A stretch of DNA of 64,000 nucleotides. Source: Auanema rhodensis. Its lineage: Eukaryota > Animalia > Nematoda. The stretch is taken from the NCBI GenBank assembly GCA_964057225.1, contig OZ059898.1, forward strand, positions 11,222,001 through 11,286,000. Direction: 5' to 3'. Each line of letters opens with the position of its first letter. Position 1 is the stretch's first letter. Shown one piece after another: positions 1,773 to 46,990 of the stretch. The notes beneath the pieces were generated by a model. That model was given only the letters and a program-made list of their open reading frames with translations. It did no database searches and was not told the origin of the DNA. Position numbers and translations under genes: made by a program.

Positions 1773-3058
1773 TTAGAGACGAGCTTCGATAAGTTGCTCC
1801 AGAAGTCTAGCATCCTTAGCGAAATTGCGGATTCCTTCAGCTAATTTCTCAGTAGCCATAGCATCCTCATTCATAGCCCAACGGAAATATTTCTCATCAA
1901 CAGTAATAGCAGGAATATCGAGAGAAGCGACTGAAAAAAAAACGCTACTTAACTTGATCGTAAACAAATGCGATACCGTTTTCACTCTTGAGAACATGAG
2001 GAACGCTCTCGTTGTCAGCGGACAACTGCTTAAGAAGGCCAGGGCTAAACATAGCATTAACAGAAAGAACTTAAATAAATTGTAAATTACCTGATAGTAA
2101 GAAGGTCACAACCAAGAAGTCCCTTAATTTCCTCAGTGTTACGGAAAGAAGCAGCCATAACTTGAGTATTATGACCATGCTTTTTGTAATAATTGAAAAT
2201 ACGAGTAACACTCTATCAATCACATAATAAAGTATCATGTACTAATTATAATAATACCTTGACTCCTGGATCATCATTTCTGTCATAACTCTTCTGTTCG
2301 GTGTTCTTAACGAACCAATCCATAATACGTCCGACAAAGGGAGAAATCAAAGTAACTCCAGATTGAGCGCAAGCAACAGCTTGTTCAAAATTGAAAAGAA
2401 GGGTCATGTTGCAGTGAATTCCATGTTTAGATTCCAATTCTCTATAAAAAAACATTGGTGAACAAACCAATTAACATTTAATAACTCACTTAGCAGCTTG
2501 AATTCCCTCCCAGGTGGAAGCGAGCTTGATGAGAATTCTGTCTTTAGAAATGCCTTCCTTTTCATACTGCTCAATAAGAGAGAGAGACTTAGCAATAGAA
2601 CCAGCGGTATCAAAAGAAAGTCTAAAAGATTTTTCAATATAAAAAAAATAAACAAATAAGCCTCACCTAGCATCAACTTCTGTTGAAACACGTCCAGGAA
2701 TTACCTTCAAAATTTCTCTTCCGAATACAACGAAAAGACGATCCATTGCTGAAGAAATAACCTAAAAGAAAACCATATAATAGATATTGAAATACCGAAT
2801 GAAATTACTCTTTTTTTGCAATCAGATCCAACTGTAGTTTTAGCATAGGTAATAGCTTCATCAATAAGGGTGGAGTAAGCTTCGATTTTCGAAGCTTGAA
2901 GAATAAGGGAAGGATTTGTAGTGGCATCAGTTGGCTGGAACTCCTTGATAGCTAAATAAGCATCATATGAATGAAAAAAATTTTTTCAAATTACCATTGA
3001 AGTCACCGGTATCAGCAACAACTGTTGTGACTTTTTTGAGTTGCTCCAAAACAGACAT
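1773..3058 (-). CDS. tald-1: Transaldolase
   Basis: Starts [20 protein letters not shown]. Contains [50 protein letters not shown] and MAASFR, and ends [28 protein letters not shown]. Confidence 0.97.
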
Positions 3059-20694: not shown

Positions 20695-22183
20695 ATGAAG
20701 ATCTCTGTTGTTCTTGAATCTACCAATCGAATTGAAAGTGTGGAAGTACAGAAAAACGAAAATTTAAATTCTAACGTTCATATTTCAGTTGCCCAACGAT
20801 GAAATGAGTGTTTTAGATTTTAAAGAAATTCTAAATGCGTTATTCGATATTAATATTGATAATAAGTTCTTTTTCTACGTTGCTGGTAAAGCTTATCGTT
20901 ATGAAAAAATTGCTGAACGAAATGGACTTGTTAAAGTATGATTTCATTAAAGTAATATTCCAAATAAGTTTTTATAGGGTTTGAATTTGAAGGATGGAAG
21001 CATTCTTGTGCTTTCTGTACAATACACTGATGCGCCTATACTAATTTCGCTAGGAATAACAGGTGAATATGAATCAGGAATTTCGCAGATATTATGAAAG
21101 TTTCATTTGTAGAGGATTACATGGAAAACTTGATCAAATCGATTAAAGTAAAGCATTCTTCTCAGGGAGAACTTATTGCTTATTTATTGTCTCAAAAGGA
21201 AGGATATAAGGTAGCCATAACGTACTATCTTAGTCAAAATGTTTTTTCAGATTTTTAAAACTCTCCGTGAAAGTACTAATAACTATTACCTTCATCAAAT
21301 TGGTAATAGTTCTCCCGGTCTGTCTAAATTTTATGATCAACGTCCAACTGATGTGGGTAGGTTACTAGAGAATATTCAAAAGTCATCTTATACTATTTTA
21401 TGTGGATTTCTGTTACTTTATACACAATTCTTCGAGGAACAGCGCCAAATCCCTCGAATACAATTAACAGATGCTGAGAAGATTATTATGGAGTAAGTTT
21501 TGAAAAATTAATTTTGTTTGCCGTTTTGGTAAAAAATGTGATTTTAAGAAATCAAAGACAAGCTATCGATGAAAACCCAGAAATTCTATTGAATACAAAT
21601 ATGCTATACCTCCATGTTAAGCTTAACGGTGTTGATATAATTGCATTCGTTGATACAGGTGAGATAATGCTTTTTTTGCTTCTTCATAACCATGACCATT
21701 TAGGAGCTCAACAGTCACTTATTAATCCGGCATGTGTAGCTAAGTGTAACATAGGCCATTTGGTCGATAAAAGTTCTATTCGAGTCTTCTCTGGAATTGG
21801 TGGAACACAGAAAAGTCACGGAAGAATATGGAAAGGTTCGCGAGTTTTCTCAAAATACATAGTCACTAAGAATTATTTAGTTGATATGGAGGTTGGAGGA
21901 CATGATGTTCCCGTAACTTTGAATGTATTGGAGAGCGAACATGAAATGCTTCTCGGACTGGATATAATGTTGCGGCATCGTGCCATCATAGATTTAGCTG
22001 TAAGTTTTAATAATAACTTCTACTTTTATATTTATTATGTAGCATCGTACTATTACATTTGCTGGTACAGCTGTAGGAACATTTTTGACAGACGACGAAT
22101 CATCTAAACTCAATTACGAAGAACAACAACGAAAACAGGATGCTATGGATGTGGATACTACACCTGGGCCATCTTCCTCCTGA
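20695..22183 (+). CDS. DDI1-like protein (divergent UBL plus retroviral-type aspartyl protease)
   Basis: UBL-like N-terminus MKISVVLES. Protease domain AIDENPE...MLYLHVKLNGVDIIAFVDTGAQQSLINPACVAKCNI...GIGG...MLLGLDIMLRHRAIIDL. No UBA domain seen. Confidence 0.85.
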
Positions 22184-26300: not shown

Positions 26301-29300
26301 ATTTTTAATCATCTTGTTTGCAGGAAATCATAAAACTTTGGAGGTTAGCACAAAAGAAATCGGTCAAGACTGCAGTTGGTCGTGCTCTTACAACAGATTA
26401 TTATTATAGAATGTGGACGGTAATGGGTAACTGCTGTGCTCGTTTGTTAAGTTGTTTGACTCATAATATTCACTCGTTCCTTTTCTCTATGTCTCTGATT
26501 CTCGTGCTTTTTCAGAATTTTGATTTGTCTCTCGTCGATCCTCTTAATCAAATCCTCTCATATTCTATTCACTATTGTACGTATCTCTAATCTTCTTCAA
26601 ATATATGATATTGTCTTCTCTGTGACTTCTAGCCTTGGTGATAGATCTGCCTTCCGAATTGATTCTGTTTGTCTCTTCTATCCCTAACGTCATCTTGCAA
26701 GCAAATAACTAGTCGGCTACGCAAAGCAAAAGTTCGAAACCGTCTTAGTGCATACCCGTAGCATCTGAAGCTAATAATCTAGGTAGCACCTAGAAACATC
26801 AAAAGAACGGTCGAGAGAGCCGGAAGTGAGAGGTAGGCGCATCATTGACAAGCTGCACTCATAAAGAATCCGGTAGTATACTTGGAACTTGAAAAAGCTT
26901 GTTTCCGCTTGCTTAAACATAATGAGAACATTTTGTTTGAACTCGATGATATGAACACAAAAATGTAAAATATCATTCCGGAAATGAAAAAAAGTCAAAA
27001 TATATAGCAATTTGAACTCGAAATGATTTAAAAATTAAATATTTGTAAATAAATTGTAAGAGTTGTATAATAATAGCAATGATCAATTCTTCGTTTTACA
27101 ATAAGAAAAGAATATTTCAAGACTAAGAAAAATTACAAATAAAATGGACCGAATACAACCGCTCAGTACGATAATTCAAACAGAAATGAAATTTTCTCAA
27201 TGTACCGCATTATAAGACGATATTACGATTTGGTTCTGTTAATAAAAGTTTTTTTTTCCAGTTCAACTCATGTTTGTCTCAGAAATAATCATGGGAGAAG
27301 GTAAATTTCGATGAATAACAAGAATACACAACATATTTAAGTTATTTTCAGAAATAATAACGATTTAAGAAAAATTTAAAAACAGTGATGTCATCAGTCG
27401 TAGGAGGAGTTGCTGTTAAGAAAAGTTGAAGTAGTATTGTATTCTAGGGTCAAGAAATCACATTCAATCAGCGCAAAATGAAAAGGGCGCACAGTTGACA
27501 GTTATATGATGGGGAGAAGAACAACGTTTTGGAAGAGAGAGAAAGAGAGAAAAAAACGAAAATCAAATCACTTACTTCTTTCTATAACATGATAAATGAA
27601 GGAAAAGATGTCAAAAAGAGACTTAAATAAAATTCATGGTCACGAGAAGTTGGACTGTAAGGATAAGTAGAGAATACGAAAAAATCGAAGTTAATTACAA
27701 AAACTGATGATTGCCTTGTGAATTTAATAAAAAATTGTTTATATTCTTCATTAAAACTTCTAAAATATATGAAAAAACAGTGCAGATTTGAAGAAAATGA
27801 AGGTTTTCAATACATGACTTTAAACGAGTTGTTGACATCTTTTCGATGATCAACGACAGTACCTGCTTCAGATGTTTGTCACACGATCTATACAGATGAC
27901 ATGGGTGTGTCAGATGAAATTTTACAATAGATAAAAATAGTATAAATATGTAATGATCATAATATATGTTATGTATAGTACGAGCTACACTAATTTAGAT
28001 AAAAAATTTAAAAAAAACAAATTATCAAATACATTAAGGAGAAGAGAAAGGAAATCCTTATATTGATGTCAGGCTAAATGAATGATCAAAGAATTCTCAC
28101 CAAAGGGATAGGGCTCGCTGGGGTGCGAACAGACAATTCGAAGCTATGGAGGGCATCACATACTCGCACTTTGGAGAAATTCCACTATCGACTTCAAAAG
28201 CGCCATATACGATGATAAATTAGTCTCCTTTCCAGAATTTTGAGACAATCATTTCCTGCATTTTGTCACAATGCCATTGAGAAAATAATAATCTTTGAGA
28301 TTTTAGAAAATTTTAAGTACAGGAAAGAAAAGAAATGTTTTGAATTATTGCTCGAATAATACTTTCCGTCATCAATTAGATTGTGAAATCAATGATGAAT
28401 ATAGTTTTGTTTTGTTTTTTAGAAGAAAAAATCAATGATATTTGAAACGATTAGATATGAATGTGAATATGAAGGCTGAGGAGAATGTGTTTACATGTGT
28501 ATAGATGAGTGTAACTGTAACTAACTGTTAATATGATATATGCTTTCGTTTAAGCAAATGTTCAATGTGATGTGAAAAATAGAAATAAATTTATAAAAAT
28601 TTCAAAATATTTATGAATTTATGATGAAGATAATTGACTTTTGAACTATTTCGAGCAGAAATGTATGACTTGCACAGACGTAGGAGTGTGAGAACAATCC
28701 ATATTCATCGCAATTTCAATGTGTAATACATTCAATACAGTCTTGCTTTTTAGTATTAATTGATGTTATCTATATAGTTGTTCCATAAATTATAGATTTT
28801 TGATAGAAATAGATGTATATTTCTTGAAAAAAAAAACAAATAGAATATAGATTGAAATACAGAGTGTGTATCAGAGTGTTAACTCTAGGATAATGCTCAC
28901 ATAAAAAACTTAATACTTGAGAAGAACATAAGTAAAATAATTATTCCTGTTTTATTTCATGTAGTACAAGGTTAAGTGAAAGTTTGTAAACAAAATCGAA
29001 ACTATTTGAGCTTTTAACATTTATATTCAGCTGAAATATGTAGGTGGAAGAATGTGATAGTATGACAAGCTATTAATTTGATAACAGGAAAGATAATTTG
29101 AAATCCTAATAACGGACAGGCTAGCCAACAATTAATCAATTTTTCAAATTTTCTTCTTTCTAAATATTATATTAATCACAGATATGAAGTAATGCTATAA
29201 ACCATATGTTGATTATGCAAAGAGAACATGACGTGTTAAGAAAATGAAAGTAATAAATCTTATATTATTTGATTCTTAGCATTTTTATACGAAATTAAGC

Positions 29301-31885: not shown

Positions 31886-33643
31886 TTACATAAATGAGCT
31901 GACTAATCTAGTAGTAGTCACAGAAGAAATCGACATACTTTGGCGCTGCATCTTCTTAACATTCATTGAGTTACAAACAAAACTGTAATTGAAAAAAAAA
32001 AGAAAAACGTACGTGTCCTAACATCCAATGAATTAGGCCAATCACTCCATTACGGATTGTTTGATTCATCACTATATAAATGATAGCCGGAAATCCTTCA
32101 AGTATGCATTTTTTTAAGTTTTTCAAGTTTTTATAGTTTTGATTGATATTTCTAAAAAGTAACAAGACACATTTAATAAGCCACCATAAAGCTAAAACTC
32201 AAACTAATATAAACTTAAAAAGTTCGACATAATTGATTTGCTCTCCTCTTCTGTATTGGAATTTCTACAAATCTGAGAATTGTAGAAATTCCAATACAGA
32301 AGAGGAGAGCAAATCTAGCAAATGTAGAACAAAACCAAAAATATGTTTTAATGAATCAAAAAAGTTTTCGAAAACTTCTAGTTAAGAAAAAGTGATTTTC
32401 AGATAAAAAATCTAAGTAGTCTTCTTGTTGTGAATAATACCTTGTATTAGTTGATAAGCAAACATCACGAAAGGAAGTATCCATTCAGGAATCTTCACAA
32501 AAATCATTGAGATATATGTAAAGGATATCCATAAATTTAAAAAGGACAAGGTAACAGATTGAAAGAAAACCTAGAAAAATTATTTTTATTCAAAATTGAT
32601 ACAAAATAATATTCATATCTAGGAATCACCTGTCGTTGATATCGCCTGATAGATCGTTTTACATTTTCGATTTTCAACTTTTGAAATACAGCAAAAAAAT
32701 AGATAATATATATGATATATATTAAACAAATTGAGAATACGACAATTCCATTATTAAAAAACATGAGGTTATCCATGTACTGCAAATCTATTTAGCTGAT
32801 TACAATTGATGACTTTGATACCGGGGATTTATCTTCGTAAATTCCAGGATGAGGTAATATGCATGCAATAATATTAGAGTATAATGGAGCTTTATCAAAA
32901 AATGCATAAATTAAACCGTAAGTATATCCCAAAACAATCAGTATGTAAGTATATTTTTCGAGAAATTCCAATGATTTCGGACTTAAATTCATTAAAACAA
33001 TATATTGATTAATCCTGTGTCTACCTTACTCCAGAAACTCCTAATAGACGTTCAATGGATAAGAGAAAACACAAAAAACAGTTTGAACCCCATACAACTA
33101 TAAAAGCATTTTAGTTTTTTTTTCAGGAAAATAAAAAAACAATAGAAACCCACAGTTGTGCATAGAACCCATCGAATATAAAAAATTAGGATAATCACAA
33201 AATGATATTCCATGATAAATACATGCAGCTAAAATATTAAAAGTTGAAAGTTAAAATATAAAAATTTCATAAACAATAAATAAAATTGATTAGAATTGAA
33301 GAACACATGTCAACAATTCCAAGGTAGAACATAATCTTATAACAAGAATGTCGGAAGATGTGCTTTTGAGTCATGACAGATAAGCATAGAGCGTAGAGAA
33401 CCTAGAAAAGCTTCATCTTTTCATATTTCAAATGTAAATTTCTGAATACATGTGTTAGAACCCCATACGTGAATGTGATTGTTCCCCATGTAGGACGACG
33501 AATTGAGTGAGTGATATTGACATCTCTCTCACTCATCGCACTAAATTTTCTTTTTTTTTGTTTCTCAAATACAAAAAAAGGATTTACCTGCAGTTATACA
33601 GTGGATTAGCTTGTAAGGAACCGTAATAGAACATCTCATACAT
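31886..33643 (-). CDS. Serpentine chemoreceptor, srt-type (copy A)
   Basis: Contains MYEMFYYGSLQANPLYNCS, CYKIMFYLGIVD, CDYPNFLY, LSIERLL and GFPAIIYIVMNQTIR. The last-exon acceptor is uncertain. Confidence 0.8.
32235..32315. repeat. Perfect 36-bp inverted repeat with 9-nt spacer, intronic in srt copy A
   Basis: GATTTGCTCTCCTCTTCTGTATTGGAATTTCTACAA (32235-32270) and its exact reverse complement (32280-32315). Confidence 0.95.
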
Positions 33644-33977
33644 GGTTTTATTTGATGAATAGTGTATAGAGAAATTTAAATTCATATGATAACTGAGATT
33701 TGGTGTTACACTTCCGATTACAGGTGTTATACTTTCTCATAATAAATCTTGAATGCCCACTTTGACAGATAACACAACTTGAAATAATAATGTTGTATAA
33801 GAATATATGTGTGATGTCGTTCTAGTAAATGTAGAAATAACGGATGAGCCATAGTTTGATATTCACAAACGAAAAAGTTCAGAAAATTCCCAGTAAGACT
33901 AATACATAACACTATTCGAATATTGTATGATATATAGAAATCTGCAAACTAATTTTAAGAGGATGAAAAATGTAAAA

Positions 33978-34063
33978 ATGTGTTTTTGAGTTATGACAGA
34001 TACTTCTACAACGATACTGTATGAAAAACTAATTATTCCTCATCTGATTGAATGACTGATATT
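33978..34063 (-). pseudogene. Deleted srt remnant (pieces of exons 3 and 2 joined)
   Basis: atgtgtttttgagttatgacagata, cttctacaacgatactgtatgaaaaactaattattcctcat and attgaatgactgatatt match, in order, separate segments of srt copy C between about 38888 and 39048. Confidence 0.75.
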
Positions 34064-34881
34064 AACTCAAGAACTCCCTGTTGATGGTGATTTGGCTGCT
34101 TCAATTGGACGATACGCTCTCTACTACCATGTAAAGAAGGACAATTACAAGAGAAGTGCTATTCCGTTGACTCCAAGACTTGCGGCAACTTTTCGTCACG
34201 GAGATAACAAATCAATCGAAATAGGTTTGTTAGTTATGGGTTTATTTCATTCAATTGGCTATTTCTAGGTGATACAATTGTAATCCGTTATTGGTCCGAC
34301 GAAGAACTTAAAGTTTCAACTCGTGCTGTGAAAATCGTTGAAGAACTGGACACAATCATCTTGGAATCGGACGAAGCAGATCTTTGTGACAAAGATCTAA
34401 TTTCCAATTCAATATTACCTCAAAAGGGAATGCAATACCTGCTGGTAATTTTTTTATCAATTAAAGCATTTTACTAAATTATTCCTAAAAATGTACTTAT
34501 TTAGATGGGATATTCGATTCTTCATAAAAAGACAAGTCATCTATCGCTTTCAACTGGAATTATTGTTAGTGATGTGACTCGAAGATTTCGATATACGGGA
34601 TCAAGCGGCTCATTAAAAGGAGATAGCGGTGGCAGCTGTTGGAACGAAAACGGGCAACTGATAGGAATGCAAGTTGAAGTACAAAAAGTGCCACACACTC
34701 AAGATGAAAAAGGACGACCGGCTTCACCTGCTTCTGGAGGCCGTTGCTGCATTGTGGCGATCATATCCATTCTTGCTAACATTCAGGTAATATTAACTGA
34801 TAATTCATGTGAACAATTTTCGGACTTTAGGATTTGTTGCCACCGGCCGACTCTGATGGAGAATATGAATGGAATGAATGA
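34056..34881 (+). CDS. Intracellular trypsin-like serine protease (wosp-like); 5' end truncated or disrupted, possible pseudogene
   Basis: Four exons with GT-AG introns splice to about 225 aa with catalytic-triad motifs ATFRH, ELDTIIL and GDSGGSCW, ending GEYEWNE*. An in-frame TGA at 34053-34055 separates it from an upstream ATG at 33993. Confidence 0.8.
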
Positions 34882-35301
34882 ATTTTCTTCTTTTTCGTTT
34901 AAATATTTCGTTGCTGCAAGTTTGTTAGCGCAGTCAGGTCCTTGGAGAAGGTGATCATTTAATAAGAGAATTTTTATTAGCGCAATTTGTGACTCGTATT
35001 GTTGCATTGCCGGAATTCTTTAAAACCTGGAAACTTGCTATAATGGTTGATTTTTGGTTCGTTAGAGCTTCAAAATCGTTGAAAATATGTAGAAAAGCGT
35101 CAGAAAGCTTTGATAATCATTCATGAAAGGTGATTACCTTCTAGAAGCTTGCCAAATTACTTCAATAGGAAAAGAAGTAGAGAAGTTTTATGAAACAATT
35201 GTTAACAAGGTTATACTTTATACAAATGTTTGCATGAAAGTCAAAAAACATCAAAATGGTTGTTATTCTTGAATTGAATATTCATTGTAAAGTCTTGATT
35301 A

Positions 35302-36767
35302 TCAAAGTTTGTAAAGATCTGTGTTAGTTGTTGCAGTAATTGAAATAACATTTGTCTTCCATATTTTCTAGAATAAAAATTAATTAATTTTATATTTCTA
35401 TTTTTACGTTGTCCTATATATACCTTTCCAGTTATTTTATTTATATATAACTGAACAGCTTCAGTTATTGCTCGATTCATTGAAATATAAATAATGGCTG
35501 GCAATCCTTATTTAATCATTCAAAGAATAATATTATTAATAATTAAAAACCTGATGCCGTTTGATAAGACTTCATGGCTAGCCTTGAAACTTCTTCAGGT
35601 ACATTGATGAATAAGAACGAGCAATACATCATAGCAGTACCGAAGTTCATCATGGAAAGAACAAGAGCTTGAATTAAAATCTAAAAACTATCATGTTTCA
35701 GGAAATTTTTCGAAAAATATTTTTTCTAAACTTGTCGTTTATATCTTCGACATCTGTCATTTTGCATGATTTCTAAGCTTCCTAGTTTGCGACACATATA
35801 GAAGCTGTATGTAATATAGATTAATAAAGTTAAAACCACAACACATCCGTTATTAAAAAATAAAAAACGATCTATATACTGAAATAATAATGTATTCAAT
35901 TAAATTCTTAATAGTAACCTTACCTGTACTTTATCATCAATTATCAGAGGATCAGGAAATAAGCAACCGACAGTATTTGAGAATAATGGGGCCTTAGTAA
36001 GCATACCAAAAAGGAATCCATATACAAAGCCAATACAAATAAAAATATACGTTCCGGTTTCAGAGAATAAAAATTTCAATGTTCTTGGGCTAAACTATGA
36101 TCAATTATCCTACTCACTAAATTTTAGTTATGATTCACCTTATTTCTGAGGCTTCTAGTAAACGATCCAGAGATAAAATAAGACATAAATAACAAGATAT
36201 ACCCCATCCACCTAGAACAACAAAAATTATTTCAGTATAATAACGATAACTTACAATTTATACCAGAACCAACTGTATATAAAAAATTAGGATAATCACA
36301 AAATGAAATTCCAAAATAGAAACAACCTGCTATAAATTTCAAGAAAAAATTAAAATCTGTTGAATATATGAGAAATATATAAGAACTGTTTAATATACCT
36401 AATATAGTATTATTCAGAAAAGAAGATATCATATCAACAATTCCAAGAAAGAACATAATCTTATAACAAGAATATTGATAAAAATGGTTTTGAGACATTA
36501 CTGGTAAGCATAGAGCATAGAGAACCTGGAATTTCAATGCGTTACAGCTTTAGAATCATGTAATCAATGCTACTTCTACAACTATACTGTACGAAAAGCT
36601 GATCATTCCCCATATAGGACGACGAATTGAGTGACTGATATTTACATCTCTCTCACTCATCGCACTAAATTTTCTTTTTTTTTGTTTCTCAAATACAAAA
36701 AAAGGATTTACCTGCAGTTATACAGTGGATTAGCTTCCAACGAACCGTAATAGAACATCTCAATCAT
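35302..36767 (-). CDS. Serpentine chemoreceptor, srt-type (copy B)
   Basis: Contains MIEMFYYGSLEANPLYNCS, CYKIMFFLGIVD, CDYPNFLYTVG, LSLDRLLE and GLPAIIYISMNRAI. Confidence 0.82.
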
Positions 36768-36951
36768 TGCAAATAGCTTTAGAAAAATGTTTTGGACTTT
36801 TAATTCTCACTTATTATATACCATGCTTACTATAATTAACTATTCTATAATATATCTTAACACTTATTGTATAGTACACAGAAAGTTCAGTTTATAAATT
36901 TGTAAAACCATATATTAATTTATTATTTATTATATTTTTACAGGTTGTATA
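36518..36951. repeat. 434-bp near-identical duplicate of 38924-39357 (srt promoter, exons 1-2 and introns)
   Basis: Both segments run from tagagaacctggaatttcaatgcg to tttttacaggttgtata and differ at only a few positions. Confidence 0.92.
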
Positions 36952-37443: not shown

Positions 37444-37622
37444 TCAATATTCTTGTTATAAGATTATGTTCTTTCTTGGAATTGTTGATATGATATCTTC
37501 TTTTCTGAATAATACTATATTAGGTATATTAAACAGTTCTTATATATTTCTCATATATTCAACAGATTTTAATTTTTTCTTGAAATTTATAGCAGGTTGT
37601 TTCTATTTTGGAATTTCATTTT
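37444..37622 (+). pseudogene. Inverted 179-bp duplicate of srt copy B (36300-36478), intron included
   Basis: Reverse-complement match by eye. The ORF track shows the same QYSCYKIMFFLGIVD...GISF peptide on both strands. Confidence 0.92.
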
Positions 37623-37759
37623 TTGTGTGTTTATATATAAATCTTCAACGTTTTGTGAATATTTAAATTATTATTAACAAATATTTTTTGTTCGTTGAAT
37701 ATAAATAAAAAATGTTTATTCATTATGTTAACTATAATGGAATGAAGAATGTTCTATGT

Positions 37760-39173
37760 TTATGACTGTGTATCAAGAAACTGTCCGGCAGATCCAATAG
37801 TGCTACCATCAATTGCCTTTTTCCAAACTTCCTAAACGTTTTTCAATATTATTTATTTATTTACTCAATATATCTTACAGCTCCAATTATTTTATTTATT
37901 TTATTTTGCACTCCATGACGTATTGTTTGATTCATGGAAATATAAATAATGGCTGGAAATCCTGTATTTATTTGATATGATCCCATTAGGAATATAGGAA
38001 TTTCTTGTGGAACAGTGATATAAGAAAAGAATACATAGAATAATGCAGAACATAAATTCATTCCAGACAAAACTAAGGTTTGAGCAAAAACCTGAAAAGA
38101 TCATATTTCCTTTTTACCTCAATTAAAGGAAACAATCGCACCTGCTGTTGGAACCGTTTGTTTGAGTTTTTCAAATTTTCGACGCTTTTTAGTTTTATAT
38201 AGACAATTAGCCAATAAAGAATATAAAATAAAGTTGTCAAGATAACAACAATACAATTATTAAACATTGTAAAATAGTCTATATACTAAATATCAGTTAT
38301 GTTATGTTAAAAAAATAGTTTAAAATTTTTCTGACCAATGATTTATCTTGCAAATTCAAAGGATCAATCACGCTACAGCCTAAAGTGTTGGAAAATATTG
38401 GTGCTTTGCAAAATATAGCAAAGAAGGCCCCATAAAAACATCCAATAGTCATTATTATGTATATTCTGTTGTTCGAGAAGAAAAAGTTGAACACTTTTCG
38501 ACTTAAAACACGGCAAATTGAAATAGTGTTAAAGCTATCACCTCATTTTAGAAACTTCCAACAATCGGTCAAATGAGAGAAGAAGGCACAAAAAACAGGT
38601 ATTTCCCCAAGCAACTAAAATTGAACTATTTGAATATCAATAGTTTCAAATTGAGAATTGAAAAAAAAATAGATTAACTTACAAATGTGCAAACATCCAG
38701 CTAGATAAAGAAAATTAGGATAATCACAAAATGAGATTCCATAATAGAAACAACCTGCTATAAACTTATTTTTGAATATATGTTCAAAATTTTAAGAAAA
38801 TCACAAATTATAACACCATTAACAAAAGCAGATATCATATCAACAATTCCAAGGAAGAACATAATTTTATAACAAGAATATCGGAAGATGTGCTTTTGAG
38901 TCATGACAGATAAGCATAGAACGTAGAGAACCTGGAATTTCAATGCGTTACAGCTTTAGAATCATGTAATCAATGCTACTTCTACAACTATACTGTACGA
39001 AAAGCTGATTATTCCCCATGTAGGACGACGAATTGAGTGACTGATATTGACATCTCTCTCACTCATCGCACTAAATTTTCTTTTTTTTTGTTTCTCAAAT
39101 ACAAAAAAAGGATTTACCTGCAGTTATACAGTGGATTAGCTTCCAACGAACCGTAATAGAACATCTCAATCAT
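37760..39173 (-). CDS. Serpentine chemoreceptor, srt-type (copy C)
   Basis: Contains MIEMFYYGSLEANPLYNCS, CYKIMFFLGIVD, CDYPNFLYLAG, LSFDRLLE and GFPAIIYISMNQTIR. Confidence 0.82.
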
Positions 39174-40030
39174 TGCAAATAGCTTTAGAAAAATGTTTTG
39201 GACTTTTAATTCTCACTTATTATATACCATGCTTACTATAATTAACTATTCTATAATATATCTTAACACTTATTGTATAGTACACAGAAAGTTCAGTTTA
39301 TAAATTTGTAAAACCATATATTAATTTATTATTTATTATATTTTTACAGGTTGTATATTTCATTCTCCTATTTTAAACTTGTTTATTAAGTTAATTCAAT
39401 ATTATGTAGATTTTATAATATAACGACGTACATAAGATATTCTTTTCAAATTTTAATTCAGACACTAAAACCAACTCTAACATCATAGAAAGAACATTTC
39501 TGGTAATATAAAGTAGTATTTATGTGCGTTCAATGACAATCTTGTAGCTTCATTGATATCACTGTATCTTGCGTTCTGTAGAACGAAAGAGTAAGTGTTC
39601 TTCGAGAAGAGACCAGATATAATAGAATATTGTACTTTTGAAATCATAACATTTAAAGTTTGTTTAATCATTCAATCAGCATTATTTCATTGAATAGCAG
39701 AAAATTGAAGCTTGTTATATAAATATTTGGTTGTATTATTTTCATTGGTACATACATGTATGCTAATTTGAATATGTCGATTTCTATTCAAATAAGAATA
39801 AATCAACTTGAAATAAATAAAAAAAATAAAAAATTATTAAATAATCTTTATTATATTAAAATATTTTATAATTTTAAACAATATAATACATTAAAATATA
39901 AATTAAAACTTTTCTTTTATAAAATTATGTTCATTTCTTGTAATTTCCAAATCATGAACAGCCGATTTTTGTTTTTGAAATTTTTAAAATTTCACGTAAA
40001 CGTGGTTTATGTCGTCTGAGCGTCAAGGGG

Positions 40031-40459: not shown

Positions 40460-41400
40460 GGATCTTTTCCTTGGCTTCTCCTCGGCTCTTCGGTTTTTCC
40501 AGGTCCCTTCGGCTGCTCGGTTCTTACTTGGTTATTCCTCGGTTCTTCCTCGGCTTTTCGGTTTCACCTCAACTCTTCAACTTCTGCTCGGTTCCTGGTT
40601 GGTTCCTGCTCGGTTCTTCCTCGACTCTTCGGTTCCTTCATGGTTCTTTGAGTTTTGTGTTCGTCCTCGACTCCTCGGCTCTTCCTAGACTCATTGGCTC
40701 CTCCTCAGTGTTTCCTCGGCTCTTCCATTTCTCCTCGATTCTTCTGTTTCTCCTAGGTTCTTCCTCGGCTCTTCGGTTTCTCCTCGACTCTTCGACTCCT
40801 GCTCGGTTCCTGCTTGGTTCCTGCTCGGTTCTTCCTCACCTCTTCGGTTTCTCCTCGACACTTCGACTCCTGCTCGATTCTTCGGTTCCTCCTAGGTTCT
40901 TCCTCGGCTTTTTGGTTTCTCCTTGACTCTTCTGTTCCTCCTAGGTTCTTCCTCGGCTCTTCGGTTTCTCTTCGCCTCCTGCTCGGTTCCTGCTTGGTTC
41001 CTGCTCGGTTCTTCCTCGCCTTTTCGGTTTCTCCTCGACTCTTCGACTCCTGCTCGATTCTTCGGTTCCTTCTAGGTTCTTCCTCGGCTCTTCGGTTTCT
41101 CCTTGACTCTTCTGTTCCTCCTAGGTTCTTCCTCGGCTCTTCGGTTTCTCCTCGACTCTTCGACTCCTGCTCGGTTCCTGCTTGGTTCCTGCTCCGTTCT
41201 TCCTCGACTCTTCGTTTTTTCCTCGACTGATTCTTTCTTGGGTCTTGTGTTCCTCCTAGTCTCCTCGATTTTTGCTCGGATTCTTCTCGACTCTTCGGCT
41301 TTCGGTTTCTGCTCGGTTCTTCGGTACCTGCTCGGTTCTTCGTTCTTCTGTTCATCCTCAGTTCCTTTTCGGGTCTTTTTCAGTTTTTTCTCGGCTTATC
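40460..41400. repeat. C/T-rich degenerate minisatellite with a 180-bp higher-order repeat
   Basis: Built from 8-11 nt CTCGGTTC/CTCGACTC-type subunits and strongly A-depleted on the + strand. 40801-40980 and 40981-41160 are near-identical 180-bp units. Confidence 0.9.
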
Positions 41401-41549
41401 ATTTTAAAGCATAAAGCATAAAAATATGATATATGGATAATAAAAACATTGTTGAAAATCAAATTATATTGCAAATCGCAATATTCTTCCCAAAAATCAT
41501 AAACAGTTTAATTGAATATTATCTATTGATACTATAATTTATATAATTG

Positions 41550-41657
41550 ATTAACTTACAAATGTGCAAGTCACCAATTATATTAAGAAAATTAGCATAA
41601 TCACAAGATGAGATTCCATAATAGAAACAACCTGCTACGTAATAGAACATCTCAATC
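41550..41657 (-). pseudogene. srt remnant: exon 4 fused directly to an exon 1 fragment
   Basis: ttaacttacaaatgtgcaa...gagattccataatagaaacaacctgcta (compare 38674-38760) is joined to cgtaatagaacatctcaatc (compare 39152-39171). Confidence 0.8.
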
Positions 41658-41990
41658 TTTCTTCATGTTGGAGGATGTATTGATATTCTTAAAGAAGTTG
41701 CTATAAACCTAGAAGTGCAGATGAATAAAACATTTTTAAAGCAATTTTAGTATATAATGATTGATTAATAGCGTTATGACTTTAATTAAACTGAAAAAAA
41801 CTAAAATCTATTAACAACTGATATTCATTGTCTACAAACACAAGATACGTATCATCAATAGGCGAGAAAAAACAAAATTTTGAAGAGATATTTTTAGATC
41901 TTCAACTGAGAACACAATGTATATTTCTATTGCATAATTAATTATACAATAAAACAATTTAGAAGAAAATATTTAAAGAAATTTTTAATT

Positions 41991-44753: not shown

Positions 44754-46990
44754 TTAGGCATAGGAATCTGTCAATTTGGTTGACTTTTCAGATACACGAA
44801 CAGGGCATTTTTTGGATAAAGTACAACGAAGTAAGATAATAATGAAAAAAATAAGAGTGATACACAGAGCAATAAATACATATTCCCATTGGAAAAATGC
44901 AGAGATATGGGGCTTTTCAACTTGCACGTGAGTTTCACTAACAGCTTCACGTCCTAAGAGATCGTAGTTGATAACACGAATAACATATTCGCAGTTATCG
45001 CCTTCCAATTGAACTTGATTCTGTGTGCTTGCTGAGTTGGTATAGATGCTTTGTGGTTCGGTTTGGCATCCAGAGTTTTGGCTGGAGCTGAAGTATTCGA
45101 TCTGGTAGATGAGCACATTGTCAATATTAGAAGATGGTTTCCAGGAGATCAAAGCTGATCCGTTACTACGAACATCAACACGAAGATCGGAAACAGATTC
45201 TGGAGCTAAAAATAAAAAAATTAGAAATCAGTATCATATATTTAATCTCTTACCACAATTAAGGCTGCCTTTGCCGTGTACCTTGGAACATTCGAAAGAT
45301 CGGAATTTCGCGGTTAATGGACGGCTCGCTACTGGCTCTTGTCCATCACGAGTTAATGGCAAAGCAGACACAGATACACTGTATTGACTGTCGAACTCCA
45401 AGTGAGTTATGAGAATGGATACAGAGGTATCAAGGACAATTTCCTGACTCAGTTGATGAGTGCTGTTGGCATACTCAAGACGATGACGACAGCTATCGTA
45501 AGAGGTACGTGGCCAGTGAAGATTAGCAGCAACACCTTGCTCAGAGTTGTATCCATTCTTCACAGTTAATGGTCCTCCTGAAAAAATTATTAATAAAATA
45601 AGATCAAATTAGACATTATGGGTACTTACCAGGAGATTTGATAGCTGGTGAAGCACTGATTTCAGCCCATTGGCTAGTTACTGTTTCTCCTAGACGACCA
45701 TTGGACCCAACAACAGTTATCATGAAGCGGTATTGAACACCGGGAATTAGTCCTTCAACAGCAAATTTGGTTTTGGATTCAATTGAAGCTGTTATCCATT
45801 GGCTTTCATCGTAGAATCCCATAGCATAAGTACGTTGTTTCCATTGAACAATATAACGTACGGCTCCACTTGGTCGAATTAATCTAAGACCAATAAGTCC
45901 TGTAAAGTGAATTTATGAAGAATGGAAGCTAAAAAATAGGACAATTACCTTCGGCGGAGTCTTCGATTTCGTCATTTACAGAAGGATTCTGGCAGAGAAG
46001 TTCAACAGATTGAATTGGAGATGTTCCAACTTTAGCTGAATCAGCGGAGCTTTCAGTCCAAAATTTAGATCCTTCAAGCATAGCAGATTTGGTGGATCGA
46101 GTAACTTTTTTGTGTGAACGACGATGTTGTTGACAACCGTATTCGCACATTTTTCCTTCATCTGATTGAATCTCGATGTATTCTTCGATAGTTCCATCCA
46201 AAAGTAGTCGCCTAGATGCTACTCCATACTGAAAACAAGACTATTAGTAATTGATACTTTACATGATATATATAAGATATTATGAATTATTAGTTTAATA
46301 ATGAAATAAATATTCAAAGAATGTTGTCATTCTATGTCGGTGAGCAGATGCTAAAACGCTAGTTTAGTTAGCGAACTGCTCAGATGAACATCAACAAATG
46401 CCATATTTGGATTTGAAAAGTGCCGAAGTAAACAGAAATTCGACACCTATAGGAAGGCCTATGTTCATTTTTCTTTCAAATAACCTTGGCCACTCTTGTT
46501 ATGAGCTTAATCCCTTCATTAGCCTTCACAGCATATGGAGAGATCAAAACATAGCACAGGGTTAGCTTAAACCGAGAGATATCCGACGGTAGTCTGCTGC
46601 TAGCAGATATAAGCCTGTCCGCTTCGTTAACCGGTTGCACAGAGCTACTCTAAGCGGAAAGCAAATGGTCAGATGCCTAATCAGCAGTCAGTTGTCCTCT
46701 TAGAGCTAATCTGACTCGATTTTTCACATACTTATAAATGACACGGTTGCTCGTTAGCTATTTAGAGCTAATCAACAAGAAAATATTTGAAGAATTCATC
46801 AAAAACGAAATTTGGAAAATAAGTGTTACAAGAACTAAAGTCTCAATTAAAAATAACAAACCTTTTCAGCACATTTGGCTTGACATTGTGCCAAACGGAA
46901 GTAGTGAGCATAATCAATCTGGATATAAGGAAGTACAGTGAAAGACAATGTGGCAATTGGTAAGAAGGCAAACACCAGTAGATTCACCAT
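44754..46990 (-). CDS. Type I membrane protein with a Cys-rich N-terminus and about three FN3 domains
   Basis: Signal peptide MVNLLVFAFLPIATLS. Cys-rich segment LAQCQAKC...CEYGC. FN3 signatures VEGLIPGVQYRFMITVV, ITHLEFDSQYSVSVSA and LISWKP...YQIEY. TM YVFIALCITLIFFIIILL and a short tail ending TDSYA*. Confidence 0.85.

Follow-up and report, generated by a model that had tools for sequence, protein, structure and literature searches.

The closest described relatives of the locus analyzed here are the WOSP proteases, a nematode family for which a preprint uses the name WASP, 'worm HtrA-like serine protease' (Widen et al., 10.1101/2022.07.12.499685). For the member MSFT-1, a toxin of C. briggsae, the preprint gives the landmark residues Lys8, Lys12, Lys25, Lys29, His148, Asp184, Ser256, and Gly273, and a substitution near the active site that is specific to MSFT-1 is tied to toxicity. 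The N-terminal part of the WASP proteins is reported to be modular. A Maverick core gene occurs within 6 kb of about 20% of the family members, and a gene tree that cuts across species is attributed to horizontal transfer. Pseudogenised msft-1/WOSP copies and decayed Mavericks are also described, for example on chromosome V of C. briggsae, in C. auriculariae, and in C. parvicauda (10.1101/2022.07.12.499685). As for how msft-1 arose, an earlier note on this DNA had named fusion with a host gene, whereas in the same preprint a MULE transposon captured the protease.

The copy in the window (the whole stretch of DNA that was analyzed, 64 kb) shares the whole protease module with the WOSP/WASP proteins including MSFT-1, with identities from 71% for P0028 up to 93% for other members. 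The His/Asp/Ser columns are the same, a PDZ domain is absent, and the gene bears introns in the window copy too. The patchy, nematode-only distribution is likewise common to the family of the window copy. However, the active-site-proximal substitution of MSFT-1 is absent from the window copy, which keeps the family-typical residue. No MULE or Maverick was detectable around it, nor was an antidote-like neighbour recognized, a kind of gene that similarity searches would not reveal. A toxin-antidote element of the msft-1/tlpr-1 type would have an undamaged toxin gene linked to an antidote, together with a MULE transposase and long inverted repeats. The protease gene of the window copy is truncated, and neither a transposase domain nor long flanking inverted repeats were found there.

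Two further groups were compared. The pseudogenised WOSP/msft-1 copies and decayed Mavericks resemble the window copy in that a partial protease gene outlives the surrounding element. Those copies keep inverted-repeat fragments or Maverick genes, whereas in the window the traceable part is limited to the protease module and approximately 50 nt on its 3' side. The bacterial and eukaryotic HtrA/DegS/DegP proteases have the same order of the catalytic triad, and the model of the relative P0020 matches DegS protease domains best. However, the sequence identity is 13–18%, and the WOSP side has no PDZ domain and no signal peptide.

Structure of the protease fragment

The protease segment and its 3' flank were delimited as follows.

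34065 to 34881, plus strand: 5'-truncated fragment of a WOSP/WASP-family serine-protease gene, consisting of the protease module only, with four exons, three GT-AG introns, and a natural stop codon at its end
34882 to 34933, plus strand: 3' flank still common to the contigs of relatives, with the read-through ORFs P0001 and P0023 aligning to 34912 and 34933

The window protease was searched exon by exon or through natural relatives, and identities were counted over the four exon pieces. The plus-strand reading frame spans approximately 34056–34881 and is interrupted by three short introns at 34225–34268 (44 nt), 34445–34504 (60 nt), and 34787–34830 (44 nt), each starting with GT and ending with AG. 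All splice-site dinucleotides were canonical (6/6). The first exon piece ends at 34224, and the others cover 34269–34444, 34505–34786, and 34831–34881. Against the annotated full-length nematode relatives of about 318 aa, the exon pieces aligned gap-free across every junction (alignment A1).

The splice model is independently supported because intron 3 is shared with relatives, whose contig ORFs P0001, P0002, P0007, and P0008 run into the same translated intron, and because P0005, an intron-less and probably transcript-derived relative, is continuous over junctions 2 and 3. Exon 3 by itself retrieved relatives at E values of 1e-49 to 1e-25, which rules out a chance ORF for the protease frame. 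All three introns of the fragment terminate in TAG, not in CAG. In C. elegans, CAG is the usual intron acceptor.

Over its 222 codons, the fragment showed a single break, the 5' truncation, with 0 internal stops and 0 frameshifts. The catalytic His, Asp, and Ser fall in family-conserved columns (alignment A1). Only one of 55 family-invariant columns was altered (54/55 kept), compared to 0 to 12 altered columns among intact relatives. The intron-containing trypsin-fold ORF with H/D/S motifs that was noticed earlier is therefore confirmed by its four exons, conserved columns, and family relatives. The frame stops 16 codons past the protease module. Since the read-through ORFs of P0001 and P0023 align up to 34912 and 34933, the donor-derived segment reaches at least position 34933.

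The GC content was 42% in the protease exons, 24% in the introns of the fragment, 28–29% in the flanks, and 34–45% in other host exons of the window. The earlier observation that the protease is richer in GC than its flanks was correct for the exons. As a foreign signature, the GC excess was rejected, because the introns of the fragment have 24% GC and other host exons are equally GC-rich. The excess is an effect of coding versus noncoding sequence.

Family assignment and predicted fold

P0028 (C. briggsae, 325 aa) bears K8, K12, K25, K29, H148, D184, S256, and G273, that is, 8/8 of the MSFT-1 landmarks, and belongs to a 90%-identity cluster that mixes C. briggsae and C. auriculariae proteins. 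A tblastn search with P0028 matched the window at an E value of 3e-81, with 157 of 220 residues identical (71%). Because P0028 matches all of the published MSFT-1 positions, the window protein was assigned to the WASP/WOSP family. The earlier 'Wosp-like' label is thus borne out, and by sequence homology the window gene is an HtrA-like protease of this family. The identities of selected relatives to the window copy were as follows.

P0020 (C. sp. 36): 93% (206/221)
P0030 (C. japonica): 89%
P0018 (C. bovis): 82%
P0028 (C. briggsae, matching MSFT-1): 71%

Within Caenorhabditis, relatives came from C. sp. 36, C. japonica, C. bovis, C. auriculariae, C. briggsae, C. remanei, C. nigoni, and C. tropicalis. 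Outside this genus, they came from Mesorhabditis belari, M. spiculigera, Auanema, Halicephalobus, and Panagrellus.

For P0020, the AF2 model (mean pLDDT 74.7) showed a beta-grasp-like N-terminal domain at residues 1–74, a disordered linker at 75–98, and then the protease domain. In a Foldseek search of this model against the PDB, the best matches were DegS/HtrA protease domains (DegS delta-PDZ) with an E value of 5e-8 and a TM score of about 0.7 on the target. An HtrA-like chymotrypsin fold without a PDZ domain is predicted from this model, P0020 being 93% identical to the window copy. The architecture agrees with the published WASP description. Intact members of the family carry a ubiquitin-like domain at the N-terminus, which a basic linker connects to a protease module of the DegS/HtrA type that lacks PDZ.

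In Pfam searches performed exon by exon, Trypsin_2/Trypsin appeared only below threshold. The Trypsin_2 scores of the window exon and five relatives were 16.7–25 bits versus a cutoff of 27.6. Because full-length relatives also score under the threshold, Pfam fails to capture the WOSP family. The PDB sequence search returned weak exfoliative-toxin matches on exon 3, and the family profile had no match among PDB sequences. Membership of the HtrA/Deg family by sequence criteria was rejected, as Trypsin_2 stays below the cutoff and the PDZ domain is absent, although the module would resemble an HtrA protease domain in the way it works.

Loss of the N-terminal region

In each of approximately 40 relatives, the match to the window began at 34065–34068, corresponding to their own residues ~93–106. 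About 95–105 N-terminal codons are gone from the window copy, and with them its start codon, its ubiquitin-like domain, and its basic linker. When the N-terminal modules of 19 relatives, covering both kinds in the family, were searched against the 64-kb window at E ≤ 10, none was found beyond noise. The sole repeated match, at 28026–28214 on the plus strand (E values of 0.38 and 6.3), was discarded because it crosses stops and has no ORF.

After the upstream stop, the frame reaches the codon of the catalytic His without any ATG. Because the first in-frame Met lies past both His and Asp, ordinary initiation on this DNA, as judged from its sequence, cannot yield an active protease. Because the relatives match only from their residues ~93–106 onwards and no N-terminal module was found in the window, the copy is a fragment of a WOSP/WASP member and not a complete member. 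The earlier remark that the ORF has no signal peptide is true, but it is uninformative, as the real N-terminus is missing.

Two unrelated kinds of N-terminal module occur among the relatives, and both meet the protease module at one and the same position in the linker (alignment A1). The cut of the window copy at ~34065 coincides with this point, where the modules of the family swap. The position may be a recombination-prone site or an exon boundary.

Junction with the srt chemoreceptor array

The neighboring chemoreceptor genes and the srt sequence that adjoins the fragment were located as follows.

31974 to 33736, minus strand: srt-A chemoreceptor gene, with its 5' end towards the fragment, recognized by protein and DNA paralogy with srt-B and srt-C
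34001 to 34066, minus strand: srt exon remnant of about 66 nt (perhaps slightly longer at its low-coordinate end), directly abutting the protease fragment
35244 to 36891, minus strand: srt-B chemoreceptor gene, with its 3' end towards the fragment (Pfam 7TM_GPCR_Srt, E 4.7e-12 on 36235–36537)
37864 to 39297, minus strand: srt-C, the third tandem paralogue, recognized by paralogy at the protein and DNA level

A spacer of 1.5 kb separates srt-A from srt-B, and the protease fragment sits in it. The plus-strand orientation of the fragment is opposite to the minus-strand srt-A, srt-B, and srt-C genes, in agreement with the earlier note. The srt remnant that had been reported to adjoin the 5' end of the protease was also recovered. 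Its 34001–34066 sequence matches one exon stretch of the paralogues, with blastn hits to srt-B (36571–36645, E 2e-8) and srt-C (38977–39051, E 5e-10). On the minus strand, it gives a 17-aa match at 88%.

The end of the srt homology lies within 1–2 bases of the start of the protease homology (alignment A2). The best explanation of such a clean junction is a deletion whose two ends lay in the protease linker and within a fourth srt gene. A rearrangement, most simply this deletion, would have welded the start of the protease module to the srt exon piece in the srt spacer. Everything on the 5' side of the module, including the initiator codon, the N-terminal domain, and the linker, is gone.

Other rearranged pieces were observed in and near the array. 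A 182-nt inverted repeat (36297–36478 and 37444–37625), 99% complementary, represents a piece of an srt-B exon copied into the srt-B/srt-C spacer. This shows that the inverted copy is very recent and that the array is under active rearrangement. Inside srt-A, positions 32235–32315 form a near-perfect palindrome with 40-nt arms (98%) and 1 nt between them, which could be a small foldback or MITE-like insertion. Past srt-C, another isolated srt exon fragment was found at 41522–41662 on the minus strand, with 74% identity to srt-C over 31 aa.

Several features elsewhere in the window were also recorded. Exons of host genes were recognized for a DDI1-type aspartyl protease (21514–22104, plus strand; Pfam Asp_protease, 1.5e-17), a transaldolase (1776–2057, minus strand; 4.7e-7), and, weakly, a fibronectin-III domain (45237–45563, minus strand). 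The segment 40377–41414 is stop-free in several frames on both strands. Within it, the minus strand at 40753–41355 carries an ATG ORF of 200 aa, which is composed of highly charged residues in tandem repeats and has no match in Pfam.

Search for a carrier element and family distribution

Mavericks are virus-like transposons by which WOSP genes are carried from one worm species to another. A Maverick was defined by core genes (polymerase B, integrase, ATPase, capsid proteins, and protease) within ~6 kb together with terminal inverted repeats. Pfam searches of 50 stop-free window segments gave no integrase, polymerase, capsid, ATPase, or transposase domain, and no ORF above 208 aa is present in the 64 kb. 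The only inverted repeats flanking the protease fragment were srt-derived or short pairs. Nearby Maverick genes or terminal inverted repeats, for which the earlier note had proposed a search, were accordingly not found in the 64 kb; this result refers to coding domains, ORFs, and inverted repeats.

The family distribution was compared across species. The C. sp. 36 genome contains at least four family members (P0006, P0020, P0031, and P0041), which are 48–71% identical to each other. However, individual C. sp. 36 members share 84–93% identity with C. japonica, C. bovis, and Mesorhabditis proteins, so that cross-species and cross-genus pairs reach 84–93% against 48–71% for the paralogues of one genome. 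The clade of the window copy includes C. sp. 36, C. japonica, C. bovis, and one Mesorhabditis at 82–93% identity. The gene tree of the family, which cuts across species and genera, thus repeats the published pattern. Taken together, WOSP genes behave as cargo that moves horizontally, which is a statement on the family and not on the window copy.

As the likeliest route, the protease gene would have arrived as Maverick cargo, or from another WOSP locus, by inserting into a fourth srt gene. After the insertion, the carrier would have been largely deleted.

Evidence for a probable young relic

The window copy is most probably a young, 5'-truncated, start-less WOSP relic and not a new gene, with a probability of roughly 0.75. 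Its youth, here a relative term, is indicated by the undamaged state of the 222 codons and three introns. We infer that the window copy is not translated. The earlier suggestion of a 'decayed selfish-element gene' comes near to this reading as a dead relic.

Relative-rate tests were performed between the lineages of the window copy and of P0020. With P0030 (C. japonica) as the outgroup, 13 amino-acid changes were assigned to the window lineage versus 1 to the P0020 lineage (p 0.002). With P0018 (C. bovis) as the outgroup, the counts were 11 versus 3 (p 0.057). The tests use few sites and depend on the assumed tree. Furthermore, the window copy was compared with the near-identical P0001. Differences were found at 8 of 94 codons in exon 3 and at 3 of 42 in the read-through that the splice model treats as non-coding. 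The two rates are thus similar, although the numbers are small.

The relative-rate results and the coding versus non-coding counts point to relaxed constraint, and the relic is already accumulating amino-acid changes faster than its intact sister. Because these counts are joined by the missing start, a young pseudogene fragment is the best reading. The good preservation of the protease module, with 54/55 invariant columns, canonical splice sites, and no stops or frameshifts, runs counter to a relic. The intact module fits selection as well as youth.

Alternative explanations

The earlier note had proposed that antisense srt sequence provides the start of a protease fusion protein, as a nascent or just-lost chimera. 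The ATG-led antisense stretch of 20 codons is real, its srt origin is confirmed, and it stands in the protease frame with one stop in between. However, this stop is itself srt-derived. It occurs at the homologous position in 3/3 intact srt paralogues, where it is held by the srt coding strand. Since it is shared by the paralogues and so predates the junction, the fused frame was never open, and the idea that the locus is one substitution away from a chimeric gene fails. The ATG is absent from the srt paralogues, and nothing suggestive of a promoter was seen. Because 3 kb of this AT-rich DNA contain 30 ORFs of at least 30 aa, a short ATG-led stretch is common background. A tblastn alignment of P0018 that extends upstream over the stop into the stretch was set aside, as the srt-paralogue DNA match explains the stretch better. 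A chimera of this kind is extremely improbable. A start could also come from an unrecognised upstream exon, either host-derived or a new N-terminal module, which would make the locus a live WOSP gene that consists of the protease module only. The intact frame and splice sites and the kept invariant columns are in line with this, and similarity searches would miss an upstream exon of a new, unrelated kind. The two unrelated module kinds at one linker point indicate that N-terminal modules are interchangeable in the family, as the preprint likewise reports (10.1101/2022.07.12.499685), and most of the N-terminal domain is likewise missing from the annotated P0006 of C. sp. 36. On the other hand, the family homology extends as far as the srt-derived sequence. 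The junction lacks an acceptor-like site, and the AG closest to it falls within conserved codons in a poor pyrimidine context. Nowhere in the window was an N-terminal module found. The accelerated amino-acid change on the window lineage and the about equal coding and non-coding divergence from P0001 also speak against selection on a working gene. A live gene is therefore unlikely, and the more specific case, in which the fragment is transcribed from the spacer shared with srt-A and takes its start from an invisible upstream exon, is very unlikely.

A different alternative concerns the arrival route only and is compatible with the dead-relic reading. Here the fragment would derive from a vertically inherited host paralogue, through local duplication or ectopic repair from another WOSP locus of the same genome. 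Its own history would then include neither a Maverick nor horizontal transfer. The 64 kb hold no Maverick trace, only about 20% of family members were placed near a Maverick core gene in the preprint (within 6 kb; 10.1101/2022.07.12.499685), the introns of the fragment are AT-rich like the host, and the srt array has undergone other recent small rearrangements such as the 99% inverted copy of 182 nt. However, the clade of the window copy spans C. sp. 36, C. japonica, C. bovis, and Mesorhabditis at 82–93% identity, versus 48–71% among the paralogues of C. sp. 36, the kind of pattern that the preprint ascribes to horizontal transfer (10.1101/2022.07.12.499685). Purely vertical descent of the fragment is improbable.

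Biological meaning

Read as a young relic, the window copy is an ordinary decaying copy of an already described family and opens no new question. If the locus were a live gene, it would represent a domesticated or newly selfish protease without the ubiquitin-like domain. It would then be a WOSP freed of its regulatory ubiquitin-like domain, and a horizontally derived cargo becoming a host or selfish gene in a chemoreceptor array.

As a relic, the locus contributes a single data point on the way in which Maverick-associated cargo genes settle in nematode genomes. The surviving piece is a protease module cut at the module-swapping linker and joined to part of a chemoreceptor gene of a fast-evolving kind. 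If its arrival route could be traced, the locus would show how fast the carrier vanishes while the cargo lingers.
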